Shown here in pieces: positions 9,425 through 20,123 of a stretch of DNA of 64,000 nt. The notes beneath the pieces are model-generated. The model was not told the DNA's origin. It worked only from the letters and a program-made list of their open reading frames with translations, and made no database searches. Source of the DNA: Cyanophora paradoxa CCMP329 (taxonomy: Eukaryota; Plantae; Glaucophyta). The stretch covers positions 124,001 through 188,000 of the forward strand of contig QPMI01000123.1 of assembly GCA_004431415.1 (NCBI GenBank), given 5' to 3'. Numbering within the stretch: the stretch's first letter is position 1; the number at the start of each line of letters is the position of its first letter. Both the position numbers and the translations under genes were made by a program.

Positions 9425-12400
9425 ATGCACAAAATGCAGATGGCGGGCGGACACGGACTTTCCGACGGCTGGAGGGCGGTGCTCCTCGCCTCCGACGGCG
9501 TCATCGCCTTCTCCTACTTCCTGATCCCAGGTGCGCGGCGCTCCGGCTCTCCGGGGCCGCCGGCCGCCGACGGGGGCGGGGGGCAGGGATGCTGGGGCTC
9601 TTCCTGAGGCGGCGGTGGGCTGACTTCGCGCTGGGCCTCCGCCTCGCCCTCGGCCTCTTCGTCGCCTTCATCCTCTGCTGCGGCGCCGTGCGCGCCCGCG
9701 CTCCCCATGGCCACCCCAGCCGGCCCCCGCCGCGCTGCCCGCCGGCGCCCTCCCAGGAGCCGCCGCTCACCGGGCCGCCCCCGCAGACGCACGCCTCGGC
9801 GATCCTGGTGGAGTCCTTCGGCCCCCGCTTCGAGTTCATGGTCCTCACCGCCGTGCGCCCCGCCCCCCGCCGGAGTGCTCCAGCGGGCCCCCGGCCCCTC
9901 GGCGACCCCCGCGGCAGGTGCTGAAGACGGGGACGGCGGTGGTGTCGGCGCTGACGGCGGCGCTGCTCTTCGTCTTCGTCCCCCTGCTCCTCGACGTCCC
10001 CCTCGAGCTCCAGCGGGAGAAGCGCCACCGCGCCCAGCTCGAGGCCCTCTGCCGCTCCCGCCTCGAGGTGCGGCGCGCCCGCGCGGGGGCGGCTGCCGGC
10101 GGCCTCGGGGGCCTCTGAGGCCCGGGGCAGGTGGAGGAGGAGCTGCGGCGGCAGCTCGAGCGGCGGGACGTGCTGCGCCGCATCACCAACGCGGTGCGGG
10201 GCACGCTCGAGGCGGAGGGGGTCTTCGCGACGGCGGCGCGGGAGATCGGGCGGGCCTTCCACGCCGACCTCTGCACCGTCTGGGTCCGCGAGGAGGCCGA
10301 CGAGGAGGGCGCGGGGGCCGAGGCCGGCGAGCCCGAGGGCGCCCCCGCCCCGGGCGGCGTCCGCTGCGCCGCCACCTTCCGCCCCGACGTCGAGGCGGGG
10401 GCGGGACCGGAGGAGAAGGCGGGTGCGGGGGCGCCCTACGCCGTCGTCGACGTCGACGACGCGGAGGCCGAGGGGGGCGAGGAGGCGGGCGCGGGGGGCG
10501 GGCGGGGCTCGGGGGAGTGCGGGGCGGGGCGGGTGTCGGGGCCGGGGCCGGGGAGGCGGCGGCGCCCCTCGCTGGGGGAGGCGGCGTGGATCCAGGAGGC
10601 CCTCCTCGCCGACGCCGTCGTCCAGGCCCGCCCCGCCCCGCCCCGCCCCGCGCCCTCCTCCTCATTCCGCTCCTCCTCCGGCGCAGGTGCCGGACGTGGA
10701 GAAGGAGCCGCGCTCCTCCCTCGGCGACTCCCTCGGCGACTCCCTCGGCGAGGCCCGCCGTCTCGAGCTCGGCGCCTCGGGATCGGACCTGATCTCCGCC
10801 TGCGCGCAGTTCGGGGCGCGGAGCGCGTTCTGCGTGCGGACGTCGTTCGCGGGGCGGGCGAACGGGCTCATCTTCGTGGCGCGGCGGCGGCCGGCGGCGG
10901 CGCTGGAGGAGGCGGACGGGGACCTCCTCACCGCCGCCGCCGAGCAGGTCGGCATCGCCTTCGCCCACGGTGCCCCCGCCCCTCCCCTCCCCTCCTCTCC
11001 TCCGCGCGCCCGCCGAGCGCCCGGGCAGCGCGGATGGTGGGGCGGCTGCGGCGGGCGAACGAGGCGCTGCGGGGGGCGCGGGAGGCCGCCGAGGGGGCCA
11101 ACGCCGCCAAGTCCCAATTCATCGCGTGCATGACGCACGAGCTGAGGACGCCGCTCAACGGTCCGCGCGTCCGCCCGGCTCGCGGGGGCCCCGGGCCGAC
11201 GGGGCGCAGCGGTGATCGGGTTCACGTCGGTGCTGCTCGACGACGCCGGCGAGGGCGCGCCCCGGGGCCTCCTCGGGCCCCCCGAGCCCTGCCCGCTCGG
11301 CGAGGAGCGGCGGGACATGCTCGAGACCATCCGCAGCAGCGGCGAGGCCCTCATGGCGGTGCGCCCGGTGGGAAGGAAAGGAAAGGAAAGGGAAGAGAAG
11401 AGAGGGAAGGGGTTGAGCTGGGGCGGCCGCGGGCAGATCATCAACGACATCCTGGACTTCAGCAAGCTGGAGGCGCAGCGGGTGGAGTTCGAGGCGCGGC
11501 CCTTCCCCGTCCCCTCCGTCGTAGAGGACTCCCTCGAGCTCGTCGTCCGCTCCTCCCCCGCCCCCTCGCCCTCCCCCCGGGCCCTCACGCGGGGCAGGCG
11601 GCGGGGGCGGCGAAGAAGGGCCTCGCCCTCACCTGGGCCCTCGAGCGCGACGTGCCCCAGGCGCGCCTCGTGCCTCTCCCGCCTGTTTCCGCCCCTCACG
11701 CGGGGGCCGGGGCAGGTGGCGGTGGGGGACGCCGCGCGCCTCCGCCAGGTCCTCCTCAACCGTCCGCCCCCGCCCCGGCCCCTCGTCCCCGCCCCCGCCC
11801 CGCCCCCCTCACCCCGGCCGGCACCCCCCGCAGTGCTCTCCAACGGCGTCAAGTTCACGCCGAGAAACGGCTCCATCGCCGTCCGCTGCCGGCTCGCCCC
11901 GGGCGGCCCCGCCGCGGGGCCCCTGGACGCCCTCGAGCCCCTCCCGCGCCTGCCCCGCTCCGCCTCGGGCCCCCTCCACCCGCGCCGCGCCTCCGCCCCG
12001 GCGAGCTCCCGCCCCGCCTCGGGGCGCCGCCTCTCCGCCCCCGCCGACTCGCCGGCGCTGCTGCGGGCGCTGCCGCCCCGCGGCGCTCCCCTCTACCTCC
12101 GCTTCGACGTCGTCGACACGGCGCGCGCCCCGCGCCCCGCTCCCCGCCCCCGCCCCCGCCCCCTCTGAGCTCGGGCGCAGGGGATCGGGATCCCGCCGGA
12201 GCGCGCGGGGCGCCTCTTCCAGCCCTTCAGCCAGATGGACGCCGGCACCACGCGGTGCGCCTCGCCCCTCCTCCTCCACCCTCGCTGCGCGGGGCCGTCG
12301 GCGAGGCGGGGGGCGCGGCAGCGAGTACGGGGGCACGGGCCTCGGGCTTGCGATCTCCAAGAAGATCGTGGAAGGGATGGGGGGGCGCCTCTGGTGCTCC

Positions 12401-13871
12401 CCCAACGCCGGCGGCGGTGCGGCCAGCCGACGCCTCGCCCCTCCCCGCCTCACGGGCCCGCCAGGCACCGTCTTCTCCTTCACGGTGGCCCTCCGCCGCG
12501 CCTCCCCCGCCGACGAGTGCGCTCCCCGCCCCGAAGCAGCGCGCCGGGCCGCCGGCGCCTGAGCCCGCCCCCGCACGCGCAGGGCCCCGGAGGGCGGGCC
12601 GGCGTCCCCGCTGCGGGGCCTGCGCGTCGCCGTCGCCTCGCCGTACCCCGAGGAGCGCTGCTTCTTCGAGGTGCCGCCGCGCCCCTCCCCGCGGGCCCAC
12701 GAGCCGGGCCCGAGCGGCGCCTCGGGCCAGGTGGAGCTCGGGCGCGAGGGCGCGGTCTGCGCGGCGGCGCCCACGCTGCTGCTCGCCCTCGCCGCCGGCG
12801 GCCGCCCCGACCTCCTCCTCCTCGACGCGGTGCCCCTGCCCCCGCCCCAGCGTGCGCCCTGTACCCCCTCGAGCCCCGCGGGGGCGCAGGGCCAGGCGGG
12901 GGACCTGGCGGCGCTCCCGGCGGCCCCGCCGGCCGTCCTCCTCGGCTCCAGCGGGCCCCGCTCCGCCGCCCCGGCCCCGGGCCCCCTGGGCCGGCCCGTG
13001 GCGCCCCGCCCGCTCCGCCGCGCCGCCCTCTTCCGCCTCCTCCGCCGCGCCCTCGCCGCCGCAGGCCCCGGCCCCGGCCCCGGGTTGCGCCGGCCCTCGC
13101 TGCCCCTGCCGGGCACGACGGGAGCCCGCTGCCGGCCGCCCTCGAGCTCTCGGCGACGCCGCCCCGCGCCGCCGCCGCCCTCCCGCCGCTGGACCCCCTG
13201 CGGGGCCGGCCCCCTCCCCCTCCCTCCGCATCCTCGTCGCCGAGGCGCCCCCACGCCCCTCCCCCTCCCCGCGCACCCGGGGAGCTGAGCGGGCGTACCC
13301 CCGCAGGACAACGCGGTGAACATGAAGCTGGTGGTGCGGCTGCTGGGGCGCTGGGCCTGCCCCCGCCCGCCACCGCCGGCAACGGCCTCGAGGCCCTCGC
13401 CGCCTGCCGCGCCCGCCCCTTCGACGCCGTTGTCCGCCCCCGGAGCCCCCGCCCCGCCGCCCCGCCTTCGCTGACGCCCCTCCCCCGCCCGCGCGCAGCT
13501 CATGGACGTCTCGATGCGCGCCCCGGGCCCCGCCCCCGCCCTCGCGCTCCCGCCGGGGGCCCCCGCTGAGCCTCGCCGCGCAGGCCGGTGCTGGACGGGA
13601 TCGCGGCGACGCGGCGGATCCGCCTCGAGGCGCCCCACCAGCCCCGCATCCTCGCCCTCACGCGCGCCCCGCCCCGCCCCGCCCCCGCGCCCTGCCCCGG
13701 CGCCCCGCCTGAACCGGCCGGCGCAGGGCGAACGGGAGCGAGGAGGACCGGCGGGGGTGCCTGGGGGCGGGGATGGACGACTTCCTGCGCAAGCCCATCC
13801 GCCTCGCCGACCTCCGCTCCGCCCTCGCCGCCCTCCCCGCCCCCCCACGCCCCGGCCCCGGCCCCCTCTAG
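9425..13871 (+). CDS. ETR1-like hybrid histidine kinase: ethylene-binding domain, GAF, HisKA, HATPase, pseudo-receiver, receiver
   Basis: TM1 SDGVIAFSYFLIP; TM2 FVAFILCCGA|THAS; TM3 LKTGTAVVSALTAALL..VPLLL; GAF start ITNAVRGTLEAEGVFATAAREIG; H-box KSQFIACMTHELRTPLN; N-box QVLLNLLSNGVKFT; DTGIGI; GGTGLGLAISKKIVEGMGG; receiver ILVAE|DNAVN..LMDVSMPVLDG..ALT|AN..GMDDFLRKP. About 21 introns. Confidence 0.92.
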
Positions 13872-14470
13872 ACCTCACCCCCGCCCCCCGGGCCCCGCAT
13901 GTACCCCAGTGTACACTCCTGCACAGCTGCTCTAGATCTTCAGTCAGTCGCTGAGTTATTCAGGCTACTAGGCTACGTATACCATTGTACGTTTGCTTCC
14001 GTTACTAAGTTGGGCTTAACTAGACTCAGATACATGTACAAAGATTGCTACGTGTAATATACTTACTGAGATACAATATGAGAGCCTCGAATATCAGCCT
14101 GACGTCGACTTATATATATTTGCTGAGCCACAGTCACTAGTGCTGGCCCACTGGGCCGGGCCAGTCATGTACCGTAGTAGTACGTAAACACGATTCTAAT
14201 TCAACGACTCCATCGAGCGCCACAATCTGTCATGCATCAAGCGCCACATTCCAATTCAAAAACTATTATGCATCGAGCGCCACAATCTGTCATGTAGTGC
14301 GGGGCGGAAAAACTACATAAATACGTAAACTATGTACATCTAGAAGCGGAAATACTCAATAAATACGTTAACTATGTTCGCCTAAAGGCAGCCTCGCGGG
14401 GGAGCGCAAGAGCCGGTGCGCCGTGGCAGCGCACGGGCTGGCCTCGTGGGGCCAGAAGCGCGGGGCGGGG

Positions 14471-17061
14471 TCAGCAGAGGGGCAGGTGGAGGGCGTCGTG
14501 GGCGAGGCCGATGACCGCGCCCTCCGCGTGGGGCCCCGCGAAGCCCTCCCCGTCCCCGTCCTGCCCGCACCCCCGCCCCCGCCGGTCAGCCCCCGCAGCA
14601 GGGGCGCGCGCGGGGCGGCGCACGGCGAAGTCTCCGCCGTCGCCGGCCTCGAACGCCGCCCCGCCCTGCGCGGCCGCCTCAGCGGGGCCGGGGCGGGGCG
14701 GGGCGGCGGGCGCGGGGCGCACCGCCTCCTCGGCGCCGGGGGCGCGGTAGGGACGGCCCCCTCCTCCTCCAGGCCCGCCGCCTGCGCCTCCGCGTCCACC
14801 CGCGCCTCCCGGGCGCCGCCTCGGCCGGCGGGGCCTCCTCGGCGGGCGGGGCCTCCTGCGGCTGCTCTTCGGCGGGCGGGGCCTCCTGCTGCGGCTCCTC
14901 GGCCGGCGGGGCCTCTTCAGCCGGGGGCTCCTGGGCGGGCGGGGCCTCCTGCGGCTGCTCTTCGGCGGGCGGGGCCTCCTGCTGCGGCTCCTCGGCCGGC
15001 GGGGCCTCTTCCGCCGGGGGCTCCTGGGCGGGCGGGGCCTCCTGCGGCTGCTCTTCGGCGGGCGGGGCCTCCTGCTGCGGCTCTTCGGCCGGAGGGGCTT
15101 CCTCAGCCGGCGGCTCCTGGGCGGGCGGGGCCTCCTCAGAAGGCGGTGCCTCCTGTGGCTGCTCTTCGGCGGGCGGGGCCTCCTGCTGCGGCTCCTCGGC
15201 CGGCGGCGCCCCCTGCGGCTCCTCCTGTGCGGGCGCCTCCTCCGGCGGCGGCGGCGGCTGCGCGCTGCCGTCGTCCGCCTGGCCGCCCGTCAGGCCGGCA
15301 GCGTGCCGCGAGGGGCGGCGGGGCGGGGGCGGGGCGCACGGCCTGGCCCTGGTCCTGGTCGGGCTCCGGCTGCACCGCCTTCGCGACGGCCGCCGCCTGC
15401 GGGCGCGGGACCGCCGGGTCGGAGGGGGCGCCCCGCCGGGCCCGGCCGCTGCGGGACCGCACCTTCTTGACCCAGCGGCCGCCCTTCTGCGCCCACTTGG
15501 CGCCCTTGTACTTGCCGGCGAGCTTGCCGAGGCCCTTCTTGCCCTGCGGGGCGGGCGCCGGGGGGTCGGCGGGGTCGTGCGGGGCGGGCGGGGCGGGGCG
15601 GGCGGGCCAGCTTCATGGCGCGGGCCTTGGCGCGCGACGCGAGGAACTTCTTCAGGCCCTGCGCTCCCTCAGCGCCCCGCCCCGGCCCCGGCCCCGCCCC
15701 CGCGCCCCCGCACCGCCTTCCCCTTGAGGCCCTGCGCTCCGGGGCCCCGTCAGCGGCGTGCGGGGGCGGGCGGGGCCGCCCTCCGTGCCCCCACCCCCCG
15801 CACCTTGGCCTTGAGCAGCTTCGCCTTGCGCAGGCCCTTGAGCAGGCCCTGCGCCCCCGGCCCCGCCCTGTCAGCCCCGAGGCGCCCCGGCGCGCGCGGC
15901 GGTGGGGGCGGGGGGGGGCGCGGGCCTTCCTGCCGCCCCCGGACCCGTCGTCGTCCTGGTCGCTCAGCTGGTCGTGCAGCTTCTCCGCGTGCTTCCCCGC
16001 CTTCCCGAGGCGTCAGCGGCCGCCCCCGCAGCGGCCCCGGTGAGGGGTAGCACCTTCTTCCCCAGCTTGCCGCCCTTCTTGAGCTTGCCCAGCTTGCCCT
16101 TCTTGCCTAGCTTGCCCTTCTTGCCCAGCTTGCCCTTCTTCCCCTTCTTGCCGCTTTTCTTGCCCTTCTTGCCCTTCTTGCCCTTCCGCATCGCCCGCTT
16201 GCCGTGCTGCGCGCGGGCCACGCGGCGCCTCAGCGACGGGCGCCGGCGCGGGAACGCGGCACGCCCGTCAAGAGGAAGGAGACCTTGCCGAGCTTGGCGC
16301 CCTTCTTGCCCAGCTTCGCAAGCATCTGCGGCCCGCAGCCCGGGGGCCCCGCGTCAGCGCCCCCCGGTGCGCCCGGCCGCTCGGCAGCGGCCCCTCGAGT
16401 TGGCAGCTCGCACGCGCCTTGCCCTTCTTGCCGAGCTGATGAAACGGTTAGCAATGAAAGCGACGGTGCAAGAAGATGCGGGGACGAACCTTGGCGAGCT
16501 TGGCTGCTTTGGCCCCCAGCTTCGCTACCTGCAAATGCGACGCGGAACGCAGAGAGGCGTCGGCCGGGGACCCCGCCGGGCCGCGACTCGGAGGCCGGCC
16601 CCGTCCCCGCTGCAGCGCGGCCCCGCAAAAAAACTGCACCTTGGCGATTTTCGCTGCCTTGGCCCCAATCTTCGCAGCCTGAGAGGTTCCAATCTGTTAG
16701 AGGCGGCCGCGCTGCAGCACGGATCTAATGGGCGGCGTTCGCGCCCCGGACGGGCAGCGCGGATCTAAGCGCCAGCTCGCCACGTGGCGGGCGCAAAAAC
16801 GGCGCTCCACTCTGAAGAGCTGAGGTAGTCTACTAAAGAGGTTTCGTTCGACAGTGACCGCGGACGGCGGCGGCACGGCGGGATCCGGAGATCTAGATCC
16901 GGATGGCACCAGTCGGGCGGGAGTCGGTGCTAGGTCCGGTCAGGGAGCTTGTAGGCGAGCCGCTGCACCCCCTCTGGCGTTTATGTTCTTTATGTTCCGC
17001 ATGCCCATCGCGCACGCACCATGACGGCGCCCTTGATGAGGAATGGGAGAAAGAACGGCAT
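14471..17061 (-). CDS. Orphan protein: tandem Lys/Gly/Ala/Leu-rich cationic modules, then an acidic Glu/Pro/Gln repeat tail
   Basis: ATG at 17061 (MPFFLPFLIKGAVM). Phase-0 exons at 17020-17061, 16640-16678, 16490-16528, 16418-16435, 16284-16325, 16054-16206, 15926-16000, 15804-15848, 15714-15731, 15608-15658, 15463-15543 and 15340-15396, then an EEAPPA-repeat exon from 15278. Ends HLPLC-TGA. Frame is ambiguous near 14720-14820. Confidence 0.75.
14820..15250 (-). repeat. Coding tandem repeat (EEAPPA / EEPQQEAPPA / EEQPQEAPPA units)
   Basis: Repeated + strand words ggcggggcctcctgc(t)gcggct and ctcttcggcgggcgggg; unit lengths are multiples of 3. Confidence 0.9.
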
Positions 17062-17494
17062 CTTGGAGTCCTCTGTTTAGCGAAGCTGCGGCGTTAACAC
17101 CGAGGTCCTCGAGAACCCTCCGAATCTGCGCCGAGGCATGAGCGGCGGGGCGAGAGCGGCGGCCCCGGGCGTGCCGGGGAGGTGTACGACGGCAAGCTCA
17201 CCAGCGCCGAAGCCGCAGTCCGCGGGCCCAGACGCGGCGAACACGTTCGGAAACACGAACTATATCAGGCGTAGCGAACGAGAGCGCTGCGCTGGGCCCG
17301 TCCTCTCGCAGACTCGCTTGACGGGTACCACCTCGTCTCCGGCGCGGGGTACAGGACAAGATAGTAACCGCCCGCGAAAAGAGCGAAAAGAGCGCGGCAG
17401 GGGCGCCGTAGCCTTTTCCACGACCTAAGGCGATCGGGCTGCTCGCGGCTGCTGTGACCGGGCCTTCCCCACTTTGGATCCGATCGGCGGCGCG

Positions 17495-18923
17495 ATGTCG
17501 GACACGCCGGTCGCGGGCTTGAGGGACCCGCTGGAGTGCCTGCCGATCGACCTCTTTCTTCTGGTCGTATCGAGCCTGTCGGCCGAGGACCTCCGGCGCG
17601 CGGCTGCGGTCTGCTCGGCGTGGCGCGAGATCTGCGGTGCGCCGCGCGTGGGCAACCCTCGGGATAGAGATATTCAGTCGTTGGCTTTCACGCGGCGGCC
17701 GTACACGCGCCCGCCGCGCCTCGAGCCCCGAGCCGGCGCGCGCGCCTCGAGCTCACTGGGAGCGGCGCGCGCAGACTCGGAGGCCGTGTGGCGGCCGCTG
17801 TGCATGCTGAGCTGGGCGGGCAAGCTGCCGCTCAAAGCGAACTGCGATGCGCCGCCTTACGCGCCCGACGAGGTGCCTCCGCCCCCCGCGCCGTCGGCCG
17901 CCGCCGCAGCCGCTGCAGATCCAGCCCCAGGGCCCCGCTTCCGGGAGCACCCCGATTGCCGCAGCCCCATGACTCGAGAAGCATAGGCTGGGGCTTGACA
18001 GGAACCAGAGTGCGCGCGGCGCGGGTCGCCGGCCTCTGACCGGGGCGCTGGCAGGCCGGCGGGGCGTGGCGGGGGCGGGGGTGGAAGGAGCGGCACGGGC
18101 GGGTGGAGCGGGAGCTGCGGCGCACGGCAATCACCGCCGAGGACCTCACCGGCACCTCCTGGCGCTTCCGCGTCCGCCCGCCCGCCGGCCCCCCGCCGCG
18201 TCGGGGCCGGCGGGCTGAGGGCGGGGGCGGCGCGGGGGCAGCTGCGGGCGAGCCCCAACGCCTCGCCGGACCGCGTCGTGCGGACCTTCACCGCCGACGG
18301 CAACTGCGCGCCCCGCCCGCCCCGCCCCGCCCCGGCTGCCAGGCGCACCCTGACCGGACCCTACTCGCCCCCCCCCCCCCCCCCCCGTTCCCTGCAGACG
18401 TCTGCCCGTGGTTCATAATGAGTGCGCGCCCACTGGGCGGCCGCCGGGGGGCCGGCGCCGCCTCACTGCGAGGGGGCGCAGAGTGGTCGATCCTGGAGGG
18501 GGCGGGGAGCCCGCGGGGCGAGAGGGACCTCCTGGAGGGCTCCCCGGGCCGGATGCGCCGCGCCGCCCCCGGGCCCCGCGTGCAGGTCGGCGACTTCCCG
18601 CCCTTCCTCGCCCGCCGCTCCGAGGGTACGCGCCCCGGGCCCCCGGGCCCCCGGTCCCCGCGGGGCGCCTCGGAGCGGGGCCGGGGCCGAGGGGCGGGGC
18701 GCGGGGCGCAGACCACGGGTGGGTGCTGACGAACAACTACGTCGAGCTCCGCTCCACCGGCTTCGGCCCCCCCGCCCCGACCCCGCCCACCCCCAGCCCC
18801 CCGCCCCGCCCCGCCCCTAGCCGGCCCCGCGGCCCGCGCGCCCGCGCCGAAGCCAGCAGCCGCAGCCGCGCGCGCCGGCTGCAGCTGCCGGGCCCGAGGC
18901 CTGTATACCATACCAGCGTTTAG
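17495..18923 (+). CDS. F-box protein
   Basis: DPLECLPIDLFLLVVSSLSAEDLRRAAAVCSAWREIC|DSEAVWRPLC (F-box), followed by ITAEDLTGTSWRFR..VQVGDFPP..HGWVLTNNYV. Confidence 0.8.
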
Positions 18924-20123
18924 CGCGGACGTCGACGGCGCGCGCCGTTCGCTGGCGTTCAGCGCTCTTGTACATCAGCTCCGCAGTTACATTTCGTGCC
19001 CGCGCAGTCTCTATTCTTTTCCCAGCAGTGTACTCGTAGATCTGGTTCTAGAGGGGGGTGCCCCGGCCTGGATCGGACTCCGGATCAGGCATGTAATTCG
19101 CTTCGAGGTTCCTGAAAGCCCTCGCAATCGGCCTTTCGCTTTGGACTATTGTAATTACGTATACTATTACTCGAGTCATGGCTTGAGTAGGGACTTTAAT
19201 AGAAATAACAGGTAGGGTGGGGTAGTTTTCGAGTATACTATGATACGTTGCAGTATTCAACGTCTGATCATGACCTAGGACTGCATGCGCAGCTGCGAGC
19301 CGCAGCGCCGCGGCACATGCATGCCGCAGTTTCAAGTTTCACTCTCAGAGCGCTAGCTATAGCTAGTTTTGTGGAATTCGAAGCTAAGTGCAGGATTAAA
19401 TACATCCGTAAAACATTGCCAGGCTGCAGGCCTAGGTCCGCGCACTCGTGCAGCGTGCGCAGGTCTTAGCTATATATCTAGATCTAGATCTAGATCTACA
19501 TACATGTACAGGGGCACACGGCAGCACGCGTCGGCCTAGCCTAGTAGGTCGCGATCGCCGAGCCTCAGAGTCGACGCGCGCGTACGTCCTGTGCACTGCA
19601 GCTGCAGCTGCGGAATGCGCAGCTGCAGGCTAGGCGCCGGCCGGCACCGCGGCGCGCGGCGCCGCGGCGGCGCGCAATTTTAAAGCTGTGGCCCAGCTGC
19701 CCGGCTACGTATACAGGGTAGCCTAGTAGCAGCCTGAGTCAGGGCCTAATATATAGGCTAGGCCTTGGCAGCTGCGCGTGCAGGGTCTTCGAATTCGATC
19801 AAATTCGAATGCAGGGTCTTCGAATTCGATCAAATTCGGGCCGCGCCGGTACCCCGGTTGGGCGTGAAAAAAGTCGCTTGAAATTTCGTGATCCATTCGC
19901 CGCGTCACCGAGCCGACGTCACGCACACGACAACCTCACGACAATTTCGTCGACAAACATCCGATGATCGCGGCAGATCGCCATCGAACTCCGACGCTTT
20001 CAAGCACGGTCAAGGGGGGCGGGCGATCGGCGCAGCAGCAGCTTCATCAAGGCTTGCAGGCTAGCTATAGTAGCAGCAGCGCCTGAGAACTGCGCGCGCG
20101 GCAGCAGCACGATCGGCGATCGC

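Follow-up and report, generated by a model that had tools for sequence, protein, structure and literature searches.

A lineage-restricted gene of Cyanophora paradoxa with small phase-0 exons encodes a protein of opposite charge blocks

Here, we provide genomic and transcript evidence that a 64-kb window of Cyanophora paradoxa DNA (the whole stretch analysed) carries a genuine, expressed, nuclear and lineage-restricted gene on its minus strand, with one untranslated and 15 coding exons that encode a protein of 449 amino acids (Table 1). The original prediction, made from the letters alone, had read twelve consecutive phase-0 exons on this strand, and RNA contigs of three studies join all of them exactly so, including both 18-nt exons. 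The 12 peptides all translate from the predicted intervals. AG stands before each exon, GT (nine exons) or GC (three exons, giving GC-AG introns after exons 4, 7 and 10) after it, and the coding lengths of exons 1-12 are all multiples of three. Chains of very short phase-0 exons can thus be read correctly from sequence alone in this GC-rich genome. The end of the gene had been placed wrongly at position 15340; exons 13-15 follow, which makes the gene twice as long as first described.

Contigs from runs of the three studies are spliced across the exon chain, showing that the predicted exons belong to one joined transcript, and the 15 introns are removed precisely in all three. The joints are carried by X1 record 3 (960 nt) and X4 record 14 (946 nt), which represent two studies, and by X8 record 21, which represents the third. 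Between the two sides of joint 16327/16490, the X1, X4 and X8 contigs hold 16 letters that correspond to the 18-nt exon 4. For exons 8-10, the surrounding joints are absent from the joint listing and were deduced from the arithmetic of the contig records: exons 6 and 13 begin at record positions 367 and 848, respectively, which fits only with 75+45+18+51+81+57 nt in exons 7-12, so that all six must be present. A contig of X15, probably a DNA run, has the unspliced form (15904-17500). As assembled contigs, these data show one form of the transcript and drop rare variants; the exon skipping considered in the original prediction does not appear among them.

The coding frame opens with the first AUG, as the spliced 5' untranslated region (186 nt) contains no ATG. 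Coding sequence has a GC3 of 0.945 as compared to an intron GC of 0.786, and lysine is encoded by AAG 63 times and by AAA three times. At the 3' end, contigs X1 record 1 and X4 record 12 stop at 13931 and 13941, with a poly(A) region near 13931. The reading frame of the window is broken between and after positions 14749 and 14807, whereas the mRNA frame is open, and it takes the two bases present in RNA to make the length of exon 13 divisible by three. Comparison of the RNA contigs with the window at these positions suggests that single-base assembly errors break the reading frame of the gene.

Table 1. Exons and associated features of the C. paradoxa gene (positions in the window)
Feature	Position	Strand	Description
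5' untranslated exon	17202..17323	-	Joint 17125/17202 in X1 and X4; contigs start at 17323 and 17309
5' UTR intron	17126-17201	-	GT-AG
Exon 1	17020..17125	-	Start codon 17061-17059; 14 aa MPFFLPFLIKGAVM, Phe-rich hydrophobic N-terminus
Exon 2	16640..16678	-	39 nt, AAKIGAKAAKIAK; joints 16677/17019 and 16526/16638; muH 0.40
Exon 3	16490..16528	-	39 nt; paralogue of exon 2, DNA 82% identical; muH 0.46
Exon 4	16418..16435	-	18-nt micro-exon LGKKGK; followed by GC-AG intron
Exon 5	16284..16325	-	42 nt; 73% like exons 2 and 3; muH 0.54
Exon 6	16054..16206	-	153 nt; 51 aa of (GKK)/(GKL) triplets, net +27; joint 16206/16284
Exon 7	15926..16000	-	75 nt; acidic/Gly spacer within basic block; joint 15999/16053; followed by GC-AG intron
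Exon 8	15804..15848	-	45 nt; basic Leu/Lys module; joint 15847/15925 and record arithmetic
Exon 9	15714..15731	-	18-nt micro-exon GLKGKA; required by record arithmetic (960-nt and 946-nt contigs)
Exon 10	15608..15658	-	51 nt; joint 15542/15607; followed by GC-AG intron
Exon 11	15463..15543	-	81 nt; last basic module, net +10, two Trp; joints 15542/15607 and 15395/15462
Exon 12	15340..15396	-	57 nt; basic-to-acidic transition; joints 15395/15462 and 15277/15339
Exon 13	14723..15278	-	556 nt in window, 558 nt in RNA; acidic Pro/Glu/Ala/Gln repeat
Exon 14	14624..14665	-	42 nt; acidic, Gly/Asp-rich; X1 record 1 positions 630-671; joint 14559/14623
Exon 15	13931..14560	-	Last 29 aa, stop codon 14471-14473; 3' UTR of ~540 nt, AT-richer
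One extra RNA base at two places	behind 14749; behind 14807	.	RNA contigs of two studies

Phase 0 is common to the 14 introns of the coding region. This uniformity arises because AAG lysine codons before codons that start with G create phase-0 proto-splice sites; of the MAG|R sites in the coding sequence of exons 1-12, 48 of 49 are in phase 0. The layout of small exons of a single phase is a by-product of lysine codons and internal duplication and gives no evidence of a designed modularity; it illustrates how a uniform intron phase can result simply from codon composition. Growth by exon duplication, as originally proposed, is supported by likeness within three groups of exons. Exons 2, 3 and 5 are mutually 73-82% alike and include the pair of exons 2 and 3 that had been recognized as 39-nt paralogues, exon 4 is 95% like one unit inside exon 6, and exons 8, 9 and 10 have their acceptor and first codons in common, with exons 9 and 10 sharing 94%. 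Repetition also occurs within exons, i.e., exon 6 is built of a 9/18-nt tandem repeat and exon 13 of a 93-nt repeat (3.3 copies, 95% matches). Introner-like identical introns were rejected, as exons 2, 3 and 5, though duplicated, have dissimilar intron flanks.

The gene shares with the micro-exon genes of schistosomes its tandem symmetric exons with lengths in multiples of three, the possibility of in-frame skipping, and a low-complexity product. Schistosome micro-exon genes have symmetric exons of 6-36 bp and products with signal peptides (PMC3961193). In contrast, only two of the 15 coding exons in C. paradoxa are 36 nt or shorter (nine do not exceed 51 nt), two exons have 153 and 556 nt, the protein has no evident signal peptide, and the assembled contigs show a single form. 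The gene departs from the schistosome type in exon size, with 36 of 1347 coding nucleotides in exons of up to 36 nt, and agrees with it in the layout in one phase and multiples of three.

The original prediction had regarded the gene as an orphan, in agreement with the lack of family matches in exon-wise searches of Pfam, PDB, protein catalogues and the ESM Atlas, which were run exon by exon, so that a remote family or a targeting signal could escape such queries. Exon 13 had only two weak extensin-like matches among 5.8 billion proteins, and exon 6 had four spurious matches among 1.84 billion representatives, of which the two inspected were bacterial collagen-like proteins; neither exon had a match in the ESM Atlas. 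Exon-wise comparison to Pfam and PDB gave only sub-threshold matches to collagen or extensin composition (Extensin_1 on exon 13, 35.5 bits with a cut-off of 105; Collagen PF01391 on exon 6, 19.5 bits with a cut-off of 27.2). Querying databases with exon 13 retrieved no full-length transcript-derived protein. Within the 64-kb window, the Lys-rich stretch is unique and has no paralogue, and Rfam and tRNA scans were empty.

Short in-frame exons with AAKxAK-like motifs are characteristic of the cross-linking (KA) domains of tropoelastin. The C. paradoxa gene resembles these and the G-X-Y exons of collagen in having short in-frame exons of one repeat unit each, AAKxAK-like motifs, and a G-X-Y periodicity in exon 6. 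However, the protein is devoid of hydrophobic elastin domains. A collagen-like triple helix is rejected, given a score below the Pfam cut-off, a maximum of eight uninterrupted triplets, and the absence of Pro from these triplets.

The encoded protein is almost entirely of low complexity and leaves no room for a domain of ~75 amino acids. Residues 1-201 (K65, G40, A27, L26) have a net charge of +66, and residues 202-449, a P/E/A/Q repeat (A60, P56, E53, Q27), have a net charge of -60; shuffled sequences reach about half this degree of charge segregation. Acidic residues appear first at position 117, and the short acidic spacer of exon 7 is the one interruption of the basic block. Acidic spacers had been part of the original prediction and are far larger than was then apparent, as the 248-residue acidic block adds to exon 7. 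In the basic block, Gly (20%) and Leu (13%) are frequent, Pro is confined to P2 and P6, Ser occurs four times and Thr is absent; its mean hydrophobicity is low. The most hydrophobic nine-residue window (Kyte-Doolittle 2.13) comprises residues 1-9. Trypsin would yield only four peptides of 7-35 amino acids, making the protein nearly invisible to tryptic proteomics.

It is tempting to propose that the protein is disordered and segregates its charges, with a cationic block that attaches to a polyanionic surface and an acidic block that neutralizes the cationic one, a mechanism deduced from composition that we regard as plausible, with slightly less than even confidence. The protein consists of three parts, namely the 14-residue Phe-rich tip, the polycationic Lys/Gly/Ala/Leu block up to residue 201, and the polyanionic block of residues 202-449, and would be largely disordered. 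Along with the hydrophobic tip and three modules of 13-14 residues that are weakly amphipathic, the cationic block might bind by charge to an acidic membrane, to nucleic acid or chromatin, or to acidic cytoskeletal tails. The acidic block, stiffened by proline, could neutralize the cationic block in cis and so keep it soluble or inactive; alternatively, it might act as a spacer that projects from the bound surface.

Lys/Ala-rich basic parts are also known from linker histone H1, the kinetoplast KAP proteins and HMGB, the latter with an acidic tail. The C. paradoxa protein is similar to H1 tails and to organellar H1-like DNA condensers such as KAP proteins in that its basic region is very rich in Lys and Ala and has AKAAK-like motifs, and to HMGB-type proteins in that a basic region is combined with an acidic tail, which might regulate binding in cis. 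Yet it has neither a winged-helix nor an HMG domain, and its contents of Gly and Leu are unusually high. Membership in the linker histones H1/H5 is rejected, although a DNA condenser like histone H1 had been an alternative in the original prediction; the protein has no globular winged-helix domain (no Pfam match for exons of at least 20 amino acids), no S/TPKK motifs, and, being almost Pro-free in the basic part, no Pro-rich SPKK-type tail.

An alternative hypothesis that we consider unlikely, although it is compatible with the N-terminal sequence, is import into the muroplast. The Phe-rich N-terminus would then be a putative glaucophyte F-type import signal, and the cationic block would act in or at the plastid, possibly on envelope, wall, nucleoid or thylakoids, and possibly as a host-derived antimicrobial-like effector. 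Targeting to plastids based on phenylalanine has been reviewed (PMC7038456). Nucleus-encoded cyanelle proteins of Cyanophora typically have a Phe near the N-terminus (within positions 1-18 in 145 of 187), with MPSF... and MAF... as characteristic starts (PMC4510345). In the C. paradoxa protein, F3, F4 and F7 lie within the first ten residues in a hydrophobic N-terminal module, and the sequence that follows is Ala-rich and free of acidic residues before position 117, as in F-type transit peptides. However, at least one Phe in the first ten residues is frequent by chance. F-type transit peptides are built of modules, with a Pro hinge at positions 10-20, an Ala/Ser-rich middle, and a V-x-A or Arg cleavage site; in the C. 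paradoxa protein, positions 10-20 are Pro-free, Ser and Thr together occur once in the first 116 residues, and a V-M-A motif occupies positions 13-15. The sequence is Lys-dominated (K43, R2) and its transit-like character extends over ~115 residues, unlike transit peptides, which are Arg-rich, while helical antimicrobial peptides are Lys-rich, as compared in Chlamydomonas (PMC10363480). Neither the N-terminus nor the tryptic peptides were found in the cyanelle proteome supplements of PMC4510345, an absence that is weak evidence, indeed uninformative given the trypsin map with its four peptides of 7-35 amino acids; in addition, the protein may be missing from the old gene model.

It is quite unlikely that the gene is a young, fast-evolving, low-complexity product of repeat expansion that is transcribed and perhaps translated, but is under little selection and has no specific molecular function. 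Its orphan status within reach of the exon-wise searches, its build from tandem repeats, some of them 95% identical, and the absence of paralogues from the window would be expected of such a gene. On the other hand, the precision with which all introns are removed in three studies, a GC3 well above intron GC, and the strong preference for AAG are in conflict with this explanation. Furthermore, a frame of 449 codons is kept over 15 exons and opposite charges are matched (+66/-60), which makes an origin without selection unlikely.

The original prediction had favored a polyprotein precursor of membrane-active defense peptides. In this model, which now appears decidedly improbable, the protein would be secreted or stored and give rise to several such cationic peptides by cleavage, and its acidic segments would act as neutralizing pro-regions. 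Anionic pro-pieces are known from defensin-type precursors, and the large anionic counter-segments of the C. paradoxa protein, with their near-exact balance of charge, are consistent with such a role. Its K/A/L/G segments with Lys every 3-4 residues are within the composition range of helical antimicrobial peptides and recall magainin/PGLa, dermaseptin, defensin-type pro-proteins and Hydra arminin; they also share with helical antimicrobial peptides the use of Lys instead of Arg. The predicted amphipathic helices may apply to exons 2, 3 and 5, three moderately amphipathic modules with a charge of +4 to +5 and a computed helical hydrophobic moment (muH 0.40-0.54) above that of shuffled sequences (p 0.02-0.08). 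Residues 15-60 also have a coherent 110-degree periodicity of 0.424 that only 0.02% of shuffles reach. Amphipathic helices are not indicated for exons 6, 8, 10 and 11, the Gly-rich bulk of the cationic block, where the computed moment (muH 0.05-0.23) does not exceed that of shuffles. The proposed G-K-R and G-K-K cleavage signals are not borne out either. Directly neighboring basic residues occur 13 times between residues 15 and 112, and the repeat unit is itself GKK; G-K-K and K-K motifs are therefore too ubiquitous to delimit peptides. Unlike in known antimicrobial precursors, the acidic block is C-terminal with 248 amino acids and defined processing sites are absent; exon-wise searches found no homology to antimicrobial families. 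No convincing secretory signal peptide is apparent, as the prediction had already noted; the only hydrophobic stretch, nine apolar residues at the N-terminus, is followed by Lys at position 10 and then by a long polycation.

Least probable, and in our opinion very remote, is a combination of both hypotheses, in which a host-encoded, Lys-rich antimicrobial-type protein with the ancestral Phe-type import signal would be sent to the peptidoglycan-walled muroplast, with the acidic block keeping it harmless in transit. If true, such a protein would represent, in a living organism, the transition that has been proposed from antimicrobial to organelle-targeting peptides, and would resemble the antimicrobial-like proteins sent to Paulinella chromatophores and the symbiont-control peptides of legumes and insects. 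More generally, import into the muroplast or cleavage into active peptides would bear on the descent of organelle-targeting from antimicrobial peptides and on host control of a plastid with a bacterial wall.

Should the disordered, charge-segregated protein that we prefer act by charge alone, it would represent a natural and extreme two-block polyampholyte (+66/-60), useful for the study of self-neutralization and condensates. Two properties of the protein count against this picture. The near-exact balance of its blocks is also expected of a masked toxic pro-protein, and the Leu content of 13% and the Phe-rich N-terminus point to more than electrostatics alone.

The gene is real and expressed, and it is an orphan for which exon-wise searches meet no described family. 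Its product is an extreme two-block polyampholyte. All twelve peptides of the original prediction translate from their minus-strand intervals, and the exon chain as drawn is transcribed and spliced in assembled contigs from two RNA sequencing runs of different studies (X1, record 3, 960 nt; X4, record 14, 946 nt). The joints in both contigs take out precisely the predicted introns and read CT..AC on the plus strand, i.e., GT..AG on the minus strand, which is thus the sense strand. As assembled contigs, these records show the presence of one transcript form and say nothing on level or isoforms. The 18-nt exon 4 was seen in three studies as 16 letters between the joint sides 16327 and 16490. The record positions (exon 6 starting at 367, exon 13 at 848) require exons 7 to 12 in full; for exons 8–10, whose joints lie outside the rows shown, presence follows from this arithmetic. 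A probable DNA run (X15), in turn, carries 15904-17500 unspliced within one contig. The window has a G+C content of 65-80% and contains the lysine-rich coding stretch only once within its 64 kb. About one third of the stretch's words are present in C. paradoxa sequencing runs, the share expected of exons; four of these runs were aligned to it.

Each of exons 1–12 has AG in front of it and a length divisible by three; behind it stands GT in nine cases and GC in three. With such an arrangement exons could be skipped in frame; the assembled contigs, which could not reveal skipping, show no such form. The GC-AG introns follow exons 4, 7, and 10 (window 16418-16435, 15926-16000, and 15608-15658) and are confirmed by spliced contigs. 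GC-AG introns usually make up roughly 1% in eukaryotes; their share in this gene (3/15 introns) is far above that figure.

While the twelve exons stand, spliced contigs show that the gene is longer and that the original prediction had captured its basic half only.

Features of the gene beyond the twelve predicted exons (window positions)
Feature	Position	Strand	Basis
Untranslated 5' exon	17202-17323	minus	RNA contigs
Exon 13, 556 nt, joined to exon 12	14723-15278	minus	RNA contigs
Exon 14	14624-14665	minus	Second contig pair, joined to exon 13
Exon 15	from 14560, contigs end near 13931-13941	minus	Second contig pair
Stop codon	14471-14473	minus	Translation

The 15 coding exons (42, 39, 39, 18, 42, 153, 75, 45, 18, 51, 81, 57, 556(+2), 42, and 87 nt) add up to a frame of 449 codons, and every one of the 14 coding introns is in phase 0. 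The lysine frame is the coding frame, because it opens at the first AUG of the mRNA (the 186-nt 5' UTR has no upstream AUG), its GC3 of 0.945 exceeds the intron G+C of 0.786, and lysine is encoded by AAG 63 times and by AAA three times. RNA contigs from two studies contain one base more than the window behind each of positions 14749 and 14807, both in C/G homopolymer runs. With these two bases exon 13 stays open, whereas the assembled window shifts to an Arg-rich frame and then a stop, breaking the frame over the last ~70 codons. We read this region piecewise in three frames and took the two codons spanning the insertions from the RNA. The likely cause is either a mistake in the assembly or a difference between strains, and any gene model built on this assembly would carry a wrong C-terminus.

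A Phe-rich, hydrophobic start (residues 1-14) opens the basic block (residues 1-201; K65, G40, A27, L26), which has a net charge of +66 and its first acidic residue at position 117, within a short acidic/Gly spacer (exon 7). The acidic block (residues 202-449; A60, P56, E53, Q27) has a net charge of -60 and consists mostly of a repeat with a 93-nt period, whose copies match one another to 95%. The whole protein is left with a net charge of +6, and its charge segregation is about double that of shuffled sequences. From this composition, the best-supported mechanism would be charge-driven binding, in which the cationic block might attach electrostatically to a polyanionic surface and the acidic, proline-rich block could act in cis as neutraliser or spacer. 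The repeat in exon 13 (14829-15136) has 3.3 copies; their 95% likeness without indels points to very recent expansion, and strains may differ in copy number. DNA-run contigs are fragmented across it.

Families were searched one exon at a time, which limits sensitivity. Pfam returned only Collagen for exon 6 (19.5 bits, cut-off 27.2) and Extensin_1 for exon 13 (35.5 bits, cut-off 105), PDB only collagen chains (E >= 0.003), and the ESM Atlas no match. Exon 13 met two weak extensin-like matches among 5.8 billion proteins, and exon 6 four matches among 1.84 billion representatives, the two examined being bacterial collagen-like proteins. H1, micro-exon genes, collagen, and antimicrobial precursors were considered, and membership of no described family was found.

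A processed antimicrobial polyprotein, as originally proposed, is a possible alternative to charge-driven binding. Helical antimicrobial peptides favour Lys over Arg, whereas targeting peptides do not (PMC10363480), and the basic residues here are Lys; the acidic segments expected beside cationic modules are also present, as a large anionic counter-block. However, most tests that define such a precursor come out against it or without a clear result. Hydrophobic moments (HeliQuest scale, 100 degrees, compared with shuffles) are compatible with amphipathic modules in exons 2, 3, and 5 (0.40, 0.46, and 0.54; shuffle p 0.08, 0.04, and 0.02). Exons 6, 8, 10, and 11, most of the basic block, give values that do not exceed shuffles (0.21, 0.23, 0.18, and 0.05). 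The coherent periodicity of residues 15-60 at 110 degrees (3.27 residues) is due to a 13-residue repeat with four lysines, and the peak of residues 61-112 at 120 degrees to G-K-K/G-K-L triplets. The basic block is 20% glycine and has a low mean hydrophobicity. Between residues 15 and 112 there are 13 places where basic residues stand side by side, so the supposed G-K-K and dibasic cleavage signals are the repeat itself and mark no cleavage. The N-terminus, nine apolar residues and then a long polycation, would be an atypical signal peptide at best.

Plastid targeting appears improbable. A hydrophobic N-module bearing Phe among the first ten residues characterises glaucophyte transit peptides, which are also Ala-rich and carry prolines at positions 10-20 (PMC4510345; PMC7038456); 145 of 187 nucleus-encoded cyanelle proteins of Cyanophora have F within positions 1-18 (PMC4510345). 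The protein shares F3, F4, and F7, Ala-richness, and 116 acid-free residues, yet lacks a Pro hinge, has one Ser/Thr in these 116 residues, and has Lys in place of Arg. Neither its N-terminus nor its few usable tryptic peptides were found in the PMC4510345 supplements; trypsin would yield no more than four peptides of 7-35 residues, its longest product being 173 residues, and the protein would thus escape ordinary proteomics. An antimicrobial-type protein with an ancestral Phe import signal, aimed at the peptidoglycan-walled plastid, is likewise unlikely.

The proposed growth by exon duplication agrees with the 73-82% likeness among exons 2, 3, and 5. Exon 4 is 95% like one unit of exon 6, and exons 8, 9, and 10 have the end of the preceding intron and the first codons in common; the intron sequences on either side of exons 2, 3, and 5 showed no likeness when compared. 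The uniform intron phase is explained by internal duplication together with the proto-splice sites (MAG|R), 48 of 49 of which lie in phase 0 in the coding sequence of exons 1–12, as AAG (Lys) often precedes a G-starting codon (Gly, Ala, Val). AAG ends eight of the first twelve exons, and 11 of 14 downstream exons start with G.

At its 3' end (contigs to 13931 and 13941), the gene lies ~60-70 nt from the end (13871) of a convergent neighbour (9425-13871), a putative ETR1-type ethylene receptor, and the 3' UTRs nearly abut. Upstream, in intergenic or intronic DNA, a 31-nt unit at 19779-19838 is perfectly duplicated in tandem (1.9 copies, 100% matches) and has TTCGAA palindromes inside. A distinct transcribed contig (17369-17500) begins 46 nt upstream of the gene's 5' end (17323) and probably represents a neighbouring gene with a short promoter region in common.
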